64,000 nt of DNA from Setoptus koraiensis (taxonomy: Eukaryota > Animalia > Arthropoda), in the NCBI GenBank assembly GCA_048013815.1, contig CM106586.1, forward strand, positions 13,392,001 through 13,456,000. The letters are read 5' to 3'. The notes under the pieces were generated by a model. That model worked only from the letters and a program-made list of their open reading frames with translations. It was not told the DNA's origin and searched no databases. The position numbers and the translations under genes are program-made. Below, in pieces: positions 34,601 through 43,684 of the stretch (positions are counted from its first letter, which is position 1; every line of letters begins with the position of its first letter).

Positions 34601-35896
34601 AACATTGAGGCGGACGAGTGAGGCTGTTGCGTAACAGTCACAGTTAGTAGCAACAGTGCACTTGTTTGCGGCAGTCCCATTGTCACGCTTTGATTTGTTA
34701 CCGTTATTTTGCCGCTCGCCAAGCTTGTGTGTGTGTGTGTCGTCTCTGCGAATTGGTTAGCGTTGTTATTTTTGCTGCTGTGGCTAATACTTTGCGTGTG
34801 TGCGTGCGTGTGTGTGTGCGCCCCCTTTTATCTCTTAATCAATTTCAATCATTAAGCGCGCGCGCGCGACAAAGCAACTATTACGTCACCGCCATCATCA
34901 CGTTACCGTTATTTGTGTGTGTGTGTCTTGGCCTATATATTCTTATTAGATACATTAGGTTAGGACAGGTGAGTTGGCTGCTGCTGTGTTGGCGGTCGGT
35001 TAGTCGGTGAACATTACCAGACAGAATGTTACGTAACTGTTGTGTGTGTGCGCGCCCCATAAACAGCAGTAGCAACAGCGATGACAACAGCGACAATCAA
35101 CAATTCATCTTGCACTATTACATCAGCGCGCATATATGCAAATAGCGTTGCGCAATAAGTGGTACAAGCGTTATAATTCTTTGCTCTCTCTCTCTCTCTC
35201 TCTCACTCTCTCTAATAAATAATTACGTTATACTAACTATGCTATTTTGTGTGCCGTGATTCACGCTCATTCCATTATGACGCCATTGTTTGTGTGACCG
35301 TCATCGGCACCGTCATCACCATCATCATCATCATCATCGCCATCATCGTCATCATCATTAGTGTTAGGTAAAGCCAGTTGCAGTGGCCAGTAGTGCACGC
35401 GTACCCAAACACGTACAACTGCCAACCGAATCGGTCGCAGTCAAACCGCCAAGACGCTAATGGAAAAACAACACACACACAACAGCCAGATAATCCGTGA
35501 ATGTATATATGAATATACGTGTATTAGTTGAATGATTCGAGGCATTAGCAGGGCGGATTACGCAACAACGCAACAACGCAGCAAGCAAACAGCACACACA
35601 AACAGACAGACAGACAAATACAAATGACAAGATTGACACACGGACAATTTACAAGAAATAAAATAATTTACATAGTTGTCGGCCCACAACGACACACCTC
35701 AGCACATTGGAAATAATCATTTGAATCATCATTTGGCGCCCACAACCGCAAAACGAGCCGAATTTTGTCGACGGACGATGCCCAATTGGTAGTGGTGCCA
35801 ATTGACCGTAGTAGCTGTTGTGTTGAGTGACCGGAAGTCTCCAAAATTGATACCACAACGGCGCCTCCCCCGCGACACGGGCCTGCCCCCATTGAT

Positions 35897-36418
35897 TTGG
35901 CGCCAAGTGTAACCATATCGTCCATAGATAATACAACAAGTTATAAGGGCCCAATTATTTCACAACATTTCAGTAGTGGCGTCGCACAAATAGAGCCCAT
36001 TGAGCCGGATAGCAAACAAACAACAACAGCAGCAGACAGCAACAGCAACAACGAGCGGCCGCTTGACAGGAGAAGAGAGAAATCAATTGTAATAGTGAGT
36101 CAATACAACAACCAATACAAATCGAAGCGGCGAAGAGGTCGGAGAAGAGCTGGCGACTTTTGGTCGTTAGTGTCTTGTTTGACTTTGATTTCGCTACAAT
36201 ACTCATTTGCATATCTATTAAGTAGCTGTGGTGCCACAGCGAGCCTAGATGGCGCTTACAGCGGCCACAAGCAGACAAATAGAAAAAATGTCAGCAGCTC
36301 ATTCATTCAGCAAGCATTCAGCAGCGATAGTGGGCACCTAGCGGCAGTCCAATCTGGCGCTGCGAGCCAGCCAATCAATGATACAAATAGCGCAAATAAT
36401 GCAAGTAATCATAGCAAA

Positions 36419-36450
<32 letters not shown>

Positions 36451-40500: not shown

Positions 40501-43500
40501 CAACAATGACATCATCAACAACAACAAACAAGACTCTGGCAACAGTAAACAGGTGATGATTGTAACGGGCGACAAGGCAACAGGCGTGGCGCAACAGCAA
40601 GCGCCCAATCAGCTGCCGCCGGGTCAATCGGGTACCGCGGGCGCGCACCAACAACAGTTGGTCGGTCAGTCGCCAAACAGGCAAGGCGGTGCAGCGGCGG
40701 CGGACAACAGTCAGCTGGACCAGCTCCAAGATGCCGCACGCCAGGCGCTCGGACAGGGCCGGCAATCTCGGGCACCGCACAAGCTCGACAGGGCCTCCAG
40801 AGGCACCGTGCCCCGGGGTATGGGCTCGACGTCGCCCTACTCGCTGGACGAGGACTCGGGCGAGCGGTCCAGCTCACCGTCCTTCGAATCGGACGACGAC
40901 AGTCCCGTTGGGGGGGCCTCATCGTCTTCTTTCAGTACGCACATTGCGTTCAATTCGAGCCACCATCAATCGTTGAAACAGCGCAACAAGCAACATCACG
41001 GATACCATCAGCAGGGCGGCCCCATTGTGGACGTGGCCACGGCTCTCGTGCCGGCCTCTTTGCAGCCGCTGGCGGCCGCTTCGCAAAATACGGGCCTCAT
41101 GACGAAATCCATATTGCGTCAGCAGCAGAAATATCTCAAGTCGAAGCAAAACAAGAAGCAACAACAGCAACAACAACAACAGAATACCCGAAATGTGCCC
41201 GTCCGCAAAACGCTCTTCCTGTTGCCCGGCGCATCGACTGCCTGGGCCACCGGAAGTGCGCCCGTGTCCGGCCCGAACACTAACCCGTCGTCGTGCCTGG
41301 CACCGCCCAAATCGGAGGACCGGGCCCGACTGCAGCCGCTCATACCGCGCTCGCCTATTATATCGCGCAACGAGTACAAAAGTTTCATGATGCATCTGGC
41401 GTCGGCCCGGTTGCCGGCCGTTGCCGCGGCCGCCACAGCCTCGGCGGCCGCGCCGCTGACAGCGGGTGTCGCGGACGACGTTGCCTGTTCGTCGGCAGCA
41501 ACAACACCAGCAACGCCCGCAACGCCAGCAGACACTAAAGTGGAACAAGCGGGCGAAACTCAGGCAGCAGCGGGCAGCGGAAAAGCACAACCGGAAGTGG
41601 ACAGTGGCCGCAGCGGCGCAGTGTGCGCCGAGCAGAAAAAAAGGAGTGACGTGCCCGAAGGGGGTGGCATAGGAGGCGAGCAAATGGGCGAGCTCATCGG
41701 AGACGAACAACAGGCTCAAACGGGGACCAAAGGTAGCCAATGTGCCTCGGACAACAGCGGTAGTGTTACCAATTTGACCGGAAGTAGACAAGATCTCCGT
41801 CAGTCTGTGTCGTCGCTGGCGTGTCAGGGCGAACACAGTGTCACTAGTAGCCTGTGCACTTGTACGCGAGGGGGCGCTGGCGCCATGGACGATTACGATG
41901 ACTCTAGTTACGACGACGACGACGACGACGACGGGGTGGCTAGCAGCGACGACGACAGCCATTGCGACAATTGCTGTTGCTCGTGCTCGCTACAGGTGAG
42001 CCAGGCAACAAGCGCTACGCAATGTCAGCACGCAACTAGTGAACTGTATTGCAGTAGCTCGGGCGCCATCGGCGTCGGGGCGCTGGGGGGACTGGCCACG
42101 CACACCAGCAATAGCAGTGGCTGCAATTTGGAGGATTTGGGCGCCGATATTGGGGCCGACAGGCCGATACTGACCACAAACAGTACAGACAGCCACGGGC
42201 AACGGCGATCGTCCGCACAAGCGAGACGTCAGCGCATGCGGAGCAGCGATGACGTAACAATGGCCAACAAGAGCACGCAAGAGTCGCATAAATCGGGCGC
42301 CACCATGGGCCACCAATTGAGTGGTCAGTTCGAGCGATCCAAAAGTCTGCTGGCCGGAGGCAATCAGAGCGACGATCTGGTCTTGTCGATGGAGGCGCTC
42401 GAGTTGGCCTCGTCGTCGCTGCTGGCCAGCACAGCGGCAACAAGTGGGCCCCTGGACAACGACAACGACAACAACAGCAACAACATCATCAACAATAGTG
42501 ATGCTTTAAAATGCGCAAAAAGGCGCCCTGGCGGTGCCGACAGACACCACCACAAACGTTGTTCAATGCAACTGACATCGGCATTGCAGAGACTGTCCAG
42601 CGAGGACCATAGCAGCGCCAACAGCGGCACTCAGGGCAAACAAGCAACGCGGGCCGGACAAGTGGACGGACAGGCGACAAGTGGCCGCGACGACGCAAAC
42701 CAGCAGACCGATCCCAACAAGACCGCTTGTTGCGCAAGGGAGCGCTCCAAGTCGTTGTATGACAACGGCGACAACAACAACAACGTACAAGCGACAAACT
42801 CTTCGTCTGTGTGCTCCCTGGCGGCCCCAACAACCGCAACCACAGCAGCAGCAGCAACAACAACAACAACCGCAACCACAACTAGCTCAACTAAGAACAA
42901 TAGTGAGAAATGCGCACCGCCGGCCAACTACAACAAAGATGATCGTTACGGTGATGAGATCGACAGCAGCCAACAACAAAAGTTGTCAAGCAACAGCGAT
43001 GACGCAACAACAACAAACAACAACAGTAACAACAACAACAACAATAACTGCAACAATAATAACGGCAGCAACAATAGCGACAACAACAACGACAACAACA
43101 AACAGCATCAACAACAACAACAACATCAACATCAACATCACAAGTCACAGGTGAATATCGACTGTGACAGCGACGACAACAACAACAACAACAACGATAA
43201 TCATCATCATCACCATCATCATCACGGCAAGTCGCATCACGGCATGTCGGGCGCCGGCCCCAGTCTGGGGGTGACCTCGCTGCTGGCCACGGCCGGCCTC
43301 AAAACGGTCACTATTCAGCGGGCGGCCACGTCGGCGGCGGCCACATTGTCTTTCAAGAGGCGCTTGCGGATGCAACGAAACTCGAAGCAGCTAGTCAGAC
43401 ACAAATCAAAGTCGGAAAATCGCGCCCGAAAAGCCCTGCGAACCATCAGTTTCATATTGGGCGCCTTTGTGTTGTGCTGGACGCCCTATCACATATTGGC

Positions 43501-43684
43501 CATTTGGGCCGGATTTTGCACCGGATGCGTCAATATTCACCTGTTTTATTTTACATATTTTCTATGTTATACAAATTCGCCCATAAATCCGTTCTGTTAC
43601 GCATTGGCCAATGCACAATTTAAGAGGGCCTTTTATAAGGTGCTCAAGTGCAATTTAAACAGTTGGCACAGGACAGGCAAATGA
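35897..43684 (+). CDS. mAChR-B: Muscarinic acetylcholine receptor, type B (class A aminergic GPCR), greatly enlarged by low-complexity N-terminus and third intracellular loop
   Basis: 7TM core is recognisable: TM1 GNILVLASF, TM2 NYFICSLALSDL, TM3 [27 protein letters not shown], TM4 TWVVP, ECL2/TM5 CAVQFLKNPAFNT...LYAGIYKTA, TM6 RARKALRTISFILGAFVLCWTPYH, TM7 YFLCYTNSPINPFCYALAN. The LVSxYTVLLITxDRF, QFLKxP, GIYKTA...EAKQ and WTPYH signatures match protostome B-type rather than A-type receptors, from recall. The frame is open from 35831 (after TGA 35828-35830). The 35897 start is a TTG and the first in-frame ATG is at 36572, so the true 5' end is uncertain. Confidence 0.93.
38903..38983 (+). 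repeat. In-frame 27-bp coding repeat x3 (HGSAGSDKY) in the mAChR ectodomain
   Basis: CACGGATCAGCyGGTTCTGACAAGTAT at 38903, 38930 and 38957. Confidence 0.95.

Follow-up and report, generated by a model that had tools for sequence, protein, structure and literature searches.

In the 64,000-nucleotide (nt) stretch of the Setoptus koraiensis genome considered here (assembly GCA_048013815.1, contig CM106586.1, positions 13,392,001 to 13,456,000 of the forward strand; hereafter the window, numbered from its first letter), one plus-strand reading frame stays open for 7.85 kb, and its translation contains a seven-transmembrane (7TM) core which, to judge from its sequence, is that of an arthropod B-type muscarinic acetylcholine receptor (mAChR). 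We think it probable that this frame is a coding exon of the single B-type mAChR gene of an intron-poor eriophyoid mite, and that the two parts flanking the first five transmembrane (TM) segments, namely the head upstream of TM1 and the third intracellular (i3) loop between TM5 and TM6, have been inflated in frame across a whole clade, mostly as disordered spacers carrying conserved motifs in collinear order. Class A amine receptors usually count 400-600 residues and have short outer heads. The window receptor would exceed this range several times over if, as we infer, the frame is translated in full.

Identity of the receptor core

The Pfam profile 7tm_1 (PF00001) matches the translation in two stretches (178.4 bits against a curated cut-off of 30.5). 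The better one covers frame residues 1127-1317 and profile positions 1-203 (expectation value, E, 2.5e-52); TM6 and TM7 make up the second, and a genome-wide search with the same profile also matched positions 172-260 at this locus. Among solved structures, TM1-5 retrieve human M5, M3 and M4 first (E 1e-41 to 1e-40), with weaker matches to non-muscarinic receptors (histamine H3, 1e-33; beta-2, 1e-30), and TM6-7, searched separately, rank human M1, M5 and M4 first at about 1e-21. An earlier note on this DNA had recognized a muscarinic-type aminergic G-protein-coupled receptor (GPCR), with TM1-5 at 39152-39733 and TM6-7 at 43421-43620. The coordinates are correct, and the assignment agrees with the fact that both halves of the core match M1-M5 best among solved structures.

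All five residues of the acetylcholine cage (Asp3.32, Trp6.48, Tyr6.51, Tyr7.39 and Tyr7.43) are kept in alignments to human M5, M3, M1 and M4. The class A micro-switches are likewise all there: D-R at the end of TM3, CWTP in TM6 and NPFCY in TM7. In the window receptor and throughout the giant clade described below, DRF takes the place of the DRY triplet; DRY is kept in the other B-type sequences checked for this feature, four mid-size proteins designated P0137-P0140. A study in ticks found that four pocket residues split the atropine-insensitive B-type receptors from the A-type and human M1-M5, the B-type substitutions relative to human M1 being Y106H, S109C, A193I and N382H (PMC13022164). 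The window receptor has all four, in the form of D-H-T-L-C in TM3, Ile at the aligned position of TM5 and Y-H in TM6. Unlike it, M1-M5 have Tyr3.33, Ser3.36, Ala in TM5 and Asn6.52 in a pocket that binds atropine (PMC13022164).

Over TM1-5, the best named relatives (62-67% identity) are B-type or gar-1/gar-2-like receptors of oribatid and trombidiform mites, ticks and horseshoe crabs, and identity to the mAChR-B of Drosophila melanogaster is 56-58%. The gene has opa-like repeats, but a Drosophila origin was rejected in view of this low figure. With arthropod B-type mAChRs as a group (Drosophila mAChR-B/CG7918 and Ixodes mAChR-B among them; 56-67% identity over TM1-5), the window receptor shares His3.33, Cys3.36, the TM5 Ile and His6.52, as well as an ALAN-type TM7, helix 8, and a long disordered i3 loop and N-terminus. 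The resemblance to vertebrate M1-M5, which belong to the A-type lineage, extends to the fold, the acetylcholine cage and an i3 loop that is again the longest and most disordered part; unlike the window receptor, however, these proteins total only 460-590 amino acids (aa). To our knowledge, B-type receptors are absent from vertebrates. On these sequence grounds, the receptor is most likely a B-type mAChR of the arthropod kind, with an intact core carrying the acetylcholine-binding residues. By analogy with its characterized relatives, it would be gated by acetylcholine and poorly blocked by atropine, and would most likely signal through Gi/o, the coupling described for B-type receptors (PMC11974548).

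When the genome was searched with the B-type core, the receptor proved to be single copy. The next loci reached 35-36% identity, the best of them being alpha-2-adrenergic-like (C1:16552213) and 5-HT7/dopamine-like (C1:1166392). No second muscarinic-like locus was found by this search, in which no A-type query was used; an A-type muscarinic receptor may be missing from the genome. An ESM Atlas search returned only generic amine-receptor clusters.

A frame held open across a clade

The frame comprises 2,617 sense codons followed by a TGA, and the preceding in-frame stop is the TGA at 35828. Over the same interval the other two plus-strand frames contain 83 and 132 stops and the three minus-strand frames 67-114, whereas this frame contains none. 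Between TM1 and a hydrophobic segment far upstream lie 996 head codons free of stops, where the other frames have 37 and 70. Given the local base composition, such a stretch would remain open by chance with a probability of about 1e-19, and the probability for the i3 loop (1,229 codons) is likewise about 1e-19. Repeats within the frame obey the same phase: 35 of the 38 rows reported by Tandem Repeats Finder have a period that is a multiple of three (3, 6, 9, 12, 15, 18 or 27), against 19 of 55 in the flanks (30-35.8 kb and 43.7-50 kb), where periods of 2, 4, 5, 7, 8, 10, 11, 13 and 14 are common. Together with the conserved motif islands that occur in frame along its full length, the lack of stops and the repeat periods support the conclusion that the frame is held open by selection.

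These findings bear out the earlier note where it reported 7,854 nt without an in-frame stop, took such a long frame to imply selection on the protein, and gave the i3 loop about 1,230 codons. Two of its other figures need qualification. The 1,085 codons it placed before TM1 are right when counted from a TTG at 35897, a start produced by bacterial-style listing of open reading frames (ORFs), and become 1,107 when counted from the beginning of the frame. The size of about 2,600 aa fits the open frame; the length of the protein is uncertain, no ATG being present ahead of codon 248.

Relatives were collected by three word searches with queries of differing length, which together covered proteins of 350 to 4,580 aa. 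Ten of them, which come from metagenomes or read-archive assemblies, are single predicted proteins of 1,373-2,977 aa with the layout of the window receptor and 83-88% identity to it in the core; the locus of one close relative lies on a plant metagenome contig. At the DNA level, the frames at two of these loci are open for 1,727 codons (L005) and 3,033 codons (L007), with 71-91 stops in their other frames. In a maximum-likelihood tree built from the TM1-5 and TM6-7 blocks, which were cut out of each protein and concatenated, the window receptor and eight relatives form a clade with 100/100 support, on a long stem (0.72) and apart from all named arthropod B-types.

In the named B-types, 70-130 residues precede TM1 and the i3 loop measures 300-657; in the giant clade the corresponding figures are 234-1,550 and 750-1,200. 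The window receptor itself, with about 1,000-1,100 residues before TM1 and about 1,200 in the loop, has the longest i3 loop found among the sequences compared. It further differs from named arthropod B-types in having DRF in place of DRY, clade-specific motifs in head and loop, and a hydrophobic segment and polybasic site far upstream of TM1. Four other sequences, the P0137-P0140 mentioned above, belong to other lineages (61-65% identity, 1,192-1,438 aa) and have 240-580 residues before TM1 and, in the three measured, i3 loops of about 630-660. They possess none of the clade motifs except PLIPRSP, found in two of them. Since their heads are long without carrying these motifs, long heads arose more than once, or gradually.

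The same layout in ten relatives indicates that the inflation is a trait of the clade, set on a graded background, rather than a peculiarity of this gene copy. The earlier note had itself named proteins of similar size in close relatives as a finding that would refute it. Its view of a singular, extreme GPCR therefore has to be given up, all the more as the genome contains about 22 other distinct 7tm_1 loci in open frames of at least 1,000 codons. We found no paper describing such receptor inflation in eriophyoid mites.

Head, loop and surroundings

Blocks conserved across the clade account for 15% of the residues of the window protein and succeed one another in an order that nearly all members share. 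In head and loop 16-20% of residues are hydrophobic, compared with 45-49% in the core. Low-entropy windows hold 30% of head residues and 40% of loop residues, shares that make the earlier description of a protein built mostly from homopolymer tracts an overstatement; outside these windows, head and loop consist of polar, biased sequence with conserved short motifs. AlphaFold2, run with clade sequences as the alignment (9 rows), returned a mean predicted local distance difference test score (pLDDT) of 45.8 for head residues 560-1145, with helices at the KLxDxIS island (residues 626-678, pLDDT 59-75) and at one other place, short strands ahead of TM1, and a confident TM1. For loop residues 1640-2110 the mean was 48.5, and two helices adjoin conserved islands. 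With only 9 alignment rows, low pLDDT is weak evidence of disorder, though it agrees with the composition; the inflated parts are predicted to be mostly disordered spacers.

Perfect (CAA)n runs with n of at least 5 occur in the frame at nine sites (37543-43194), always on the sense strand; every one of the three phases is used, giving poly-Gln (three), poly-Asn (four) and poly-Thr (two). Because the same repeat is read as Gln, Asn or Thr depending on phase, growth would have proceeded largely by trinucleotide slippage. The phases of the (CAA)n runs and a 27-nt unit present three times in the head, which is a recent in-frame duplication, point to repeat slippage as the likely source of new sequence, filtered for frame only. 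The head (about 1,000 codons) and the i3 loop (about 1,200 codons), about 2,200 codons together, have grown within the clade, always in frame. One could envision that the spacers are tolerated slippage products whose length and sequence drift under weak constraint, and that the short conserved motifs, in their fixed collinear order, are the functional units. In the head, an N-terminal hydrophobic anchor or signal, a polybasic site, a helix motif and a glycosylated block before TM1 might serve in targeting and possibly in cleavage of the head. In the loop, an acidic serine cluster, a proline-rich motif, a cysteine cluster and a pre-TM6 motif might serve in phosphorylation or arrestin binding, docking and lipid anchoring. 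More specifically, the acidic serine cluster 'SSSPSFESDDDSPVGGASS' is a candidate phosphorylation or arrestin-type site, and the Cys-rich islands would suit palmitoylation or metal binding.

Third intracellular loops longer than about 45 residues have been proposed to gate G-protein access and to sharpen selectivity, M1 being among the receptors tested (Sadler et al. 2023, PMC10033409). The window loop is about 25 times as long as that threshold. A long i3 loop can gate the choice of G protein (PMC10033409), but about 50 residues may do as much as 1,200.

The N-terminal end of the protein is less clearly defined. The first in-frame ATG lies downstream of the hydrophobic segment, and all 247 codons ahead of it are sense codons, whereas the other frames have 13 and 28 stops there (chance 1.4e-6). 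A comparable hydrophobic segment is found near the start in five of the eight relatives checked (P0001, P0003, P0004, P0007 and P0013), and two relatives have a Met directly at it, as in an ordinary signal peptide. The relatives are open for 71-312 codons upstream of their own hydrophobic segments, and no shared motif was found ahead of these segments among the relatives compared. An upstream ATG exon was sought by tblastn of the relatives' heads against positions 25-38 kb of the window, which yielded only the in-frame homology at 37280-37942 and low-complexity noise. This homology aligns the polybasic site with a basic cluster of P0002 (E 6e-7), and the remaining relatives have basic clusters at the same relative place. 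The KLDDxIS motif is present in nine of ten giant sequences (eight of nine species) and in no other B-type checked; in the same proportion of species, this island and the polybasic site are in frame with the 7TM core with no intervening stop. Ahead of the island, the heads of relatives cannot be aligned with one another.

As no in-frame ATG exists upstream of codon 248, the gene model is incomplete, and translation would start either in an upstream ATG exon or at a non-AUG codon. Counted from the first ATG, the protein would measure 2,370 aa; with entry into the frame farther upstream, it could reach 2,617 aa or exceed that length. The hydrophobic segment could be a signal peptide that follows a long leader; alternatively, a cytoplasmic head would precede it, and it would form an additional membrane helix. 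The open stretch that precedes it would correspondingly be such a cytoplasmic head, begun in an upstream ATG exon or at a non-AUG start, or else a leader open by chance. No Pfam domain was found outside the 7TM core (E <= 0.01), including any GAIN/GPS-type ectodomain ahead of TM1. An adhesion-type receptor with a folded ectodomain was rejected on this basis and from the AlphaFold2 model of head residues 560-1145, which has only two or three helices and TM1.

Table 1. Features of the receptor locus, in window coordinates
Feature	Position	Strand	Remarks
Whole uninterrupted reading frame	35831..43684	+	2,617 codons + TGA; main, possibly only, coding exon of the receptor gene
Open stretch ahead of hydrophobic segment, without ATG	35831..36154	+	No stop in 111 codons (other frames: 6 and 8); chance of being open 0.005
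Hydrophobic segment, signal-peptide or signal-anchor like, with Arg-rich stretch before it	36155..36241	+	Frame residues 109-137
First in-frame ATG (codon 248)	36572..36574	+	Frame scan
Polybasic motif, furin-site-like	37448..37483	+	Residues 540-551; about 100 residues ahead of KLxDxIS island; cleavage putative
Head island 'KLNDFISQSND' (clade motif KLDDxISKSSEPFW)	37790..37825	+	Within predicted helix
Thr/Ser/Pro-rich mucin-like tract of trinucleotide repeats	38001..38092	+	
27-nt unit x3, 98% matching, in frame (9-residue peptide x3)	38903..38983	+	Tandem Repeats Finder
Conserved pre-TM1 block with N-glycosylation sequon (NLT) and ITGLELDP motif	39050..39154	+	Clade-specific; many invariant columns; short strands predicted
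TM1-TM5 of 7TM core	39155..39733	+	Asp3.32, His3.33 and Cys3.36 (39395-39415), DRF (39452-39460), B-type Ile in TM5
Third intracellular loop, about 1,229 codons	39734..43420	+	Polar, biased (S, A, Q, N, D); 16% hydrophobic residues
Loop island 'SSSPSFESDDDSPVGGASS', acidic serine cluster	40862..40924	+	Nearly invariant in all clade members
Loop island 'PLIPRSPIISRNEY', then predicted helix	41330..41377	+	PLIPRSP core common to other acariform mites
Cys-rich loop islands (CxC, then HCDxCCxxCS)	41855..41989	+	Invariant cysteines; low model confidence
Loop island 'GVTSLLATAGLKT' (GVTSLLA-type)	43265..43306	+	About 40 residues ahead of TM6
Membrane-adjacent basic stretch, TM6, TM7, helix 8	43403..43681	+	CWxP, Tyr6.51, B-type His6.52, Tyr7.39, Tyr7.43, NPxxY
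AATAAA, possible poly(A) signal	43785..43790	+	About 100 nt past stop codon

Opposite the GC-rich middle of the loop, an ATG-initiated ORF of 347 aa (40919-41962, minus strand) is probably a by-product of codon bias on the sense strand. Downstream, and convergent to the receptor, lies an ORF of 518 aa with a membrane-bound O-acyltransferase (MBOAT) domain (43947-45503, minus strand; E 1.5e-32). The stop codons of the two genes are 262 nt apart, with a (TAT)21 array in the gap, and no MBOAT gene was found beside the receptor in the loci of relatives. Farther away, an ORF of 239 aa (17982-18698, plus strand) shows a weak match to 'New_glue' that falls below the cut-off (E 5e-4; 20 bits against 31). 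An Rfam scan of 30-48 kb gave no match.

The assembly consists of two pieces totaling 48.76 Mb. Eriophyoid mites have two chromosomes and the telomere repeat TTTGG (PMC11879100), and the published account of Setoptus koraiensis describes a 47-Mb, two-chromosome assembly with an N50 of 24.53 Mb (PMC11920263). On the piece that includes the window (C2), (TTTGG)n arrays are found at C2:1407964-1408218 (minus) and C2:24499030-24499184 (plus). The array near 24.5 Mb may mark the end of the piece; the other, 1.4 Mb from its start and in opposite orientation, could reflect a misjoin or an interstitial array.

Alternative readings and significance

Several points weigh against our interpretation. The core tree included no A-type sequence, as outgroup or otherwise, and places the giant clade on its long stem. 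The frame and the signal-like segment extend upstream of codon 248, yet no in-frame ATG is found there. The alignments supplied to AlphaFold2 were shallow, and the functions proposed for the islands are guesses from composition. At one relative's locus (L006), the sequence matches L007 exactly throughout 9.1 kb, apart from a single additional G within a run of Gs (L006:11265-11272); this 1-nt indel breaks the loop frame and splits the product into predicted proteins of 1,737 and 740 aa. The extra G is probably a sequencing error. Finally, splicing within the frame is possible.

The mature receptor could in fact be much shorter if large in-frame parts of the head or loop were spliced out as introns within the exon, constitutively or in some isoforms. 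The mAChR-B of D. melanogaster offers a precedent of sorts: a 'short variant' of 755 aa is listed for it, and its close relatives within Drosophila have forms of about 1,020 aa. However, intronic sequence would be expected to accumulate stops and repeats out of phase, neither of which appears in the 7.85 kb, and conserved islands, each in frame, are distributed over both head and loop. Moreover, in a close pair of relatives (P0003 and P0014) that differ by 3.8% in the head, 1.4% in the loop and 0% in the core, there is no indel over 1,840 residues, and eriophyoid genomes are reported to have purged introns. Extensive splicing of this kind thus seems unlikely to us. It is very unlikely, in our opinion, that the first 1,000 or so codons lie outside the receptor, which would then begin at an internal Met near TM1 (codon 952 or 990, for example), the upstream frame being a leader or a separate product. 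Such a start would fit the lack of an ATG ahead of codon 248 and the fact that the head is the fastest-evolving part, not alignable between relatives before the KLxDxIS sequence. It would leave unaccounted for the 996 head codons free of stops, the island and polybasic site conserved in frame with the core in eight of nine species, and the signal-like segments that recur near the starts of relatives.

Trinucleotide arrays are numerous at the locus, the published eriophyoid assembly of comparable size was built from noisy long reads (PMC11920263), and a homopolymer error appears to affect one relative's contig. These circumstances might suggest that the length of the frame is an assembly artefact in repeat-rich DNA, or that the locus is a decaying pseudogene. 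We regard either as extremely improbable, since the same architecture is found in independent assemblies of relatives, head and loop are mostly unique sequence rather than repeat, and all hallmark residues of the core are intact; the pseudogene reading was rejected on account of the intact core and the absence of stops. Overall, the frame is free of stops, contains islands and repeats in phase with it, and has counterparts in independent assemblies of relatives, all of which makes these three alternatives less likely than the clade-wide inflation of a B-type mAChR that we favor.

A more elaborate variant of the inflated receptor can also be imagined. The protein might cross the membrane eight times, with a cytoplasmic head, the hydrophobic segment as an extra helix, a glycosylated mucin-like extracellular stalk (about 950 residues) with cleavage at the conserved polybasic site, and the 7TM core, and its inner loop might be a scaffold for docking motifs rather than tolerated bloat. 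Although we consider this quite unlikely, it would, if true, mean that eriophyoid mites have conserved a class A amine receptor whose exterior is processed and resembles that of adhesion receptors and whose interior is hub-like.

As an inflated B-type mAChR in which most of the added length is spacer, the receptor and its relatives, with their open frames of 1,400-3,000 codons, provide a natural test of how much disordered sequence a GPCR can carry, and of which short motifs in the i3 loop and head matter. They also suggest that extreme genome streamlining, by loss of introns and repeats, can coexist with inflation of protein length. B-type receptors have been discussed as acaricide targets, and the B-type receptor of a lineage of crop-pest mites is therefore of some applied interest as well.

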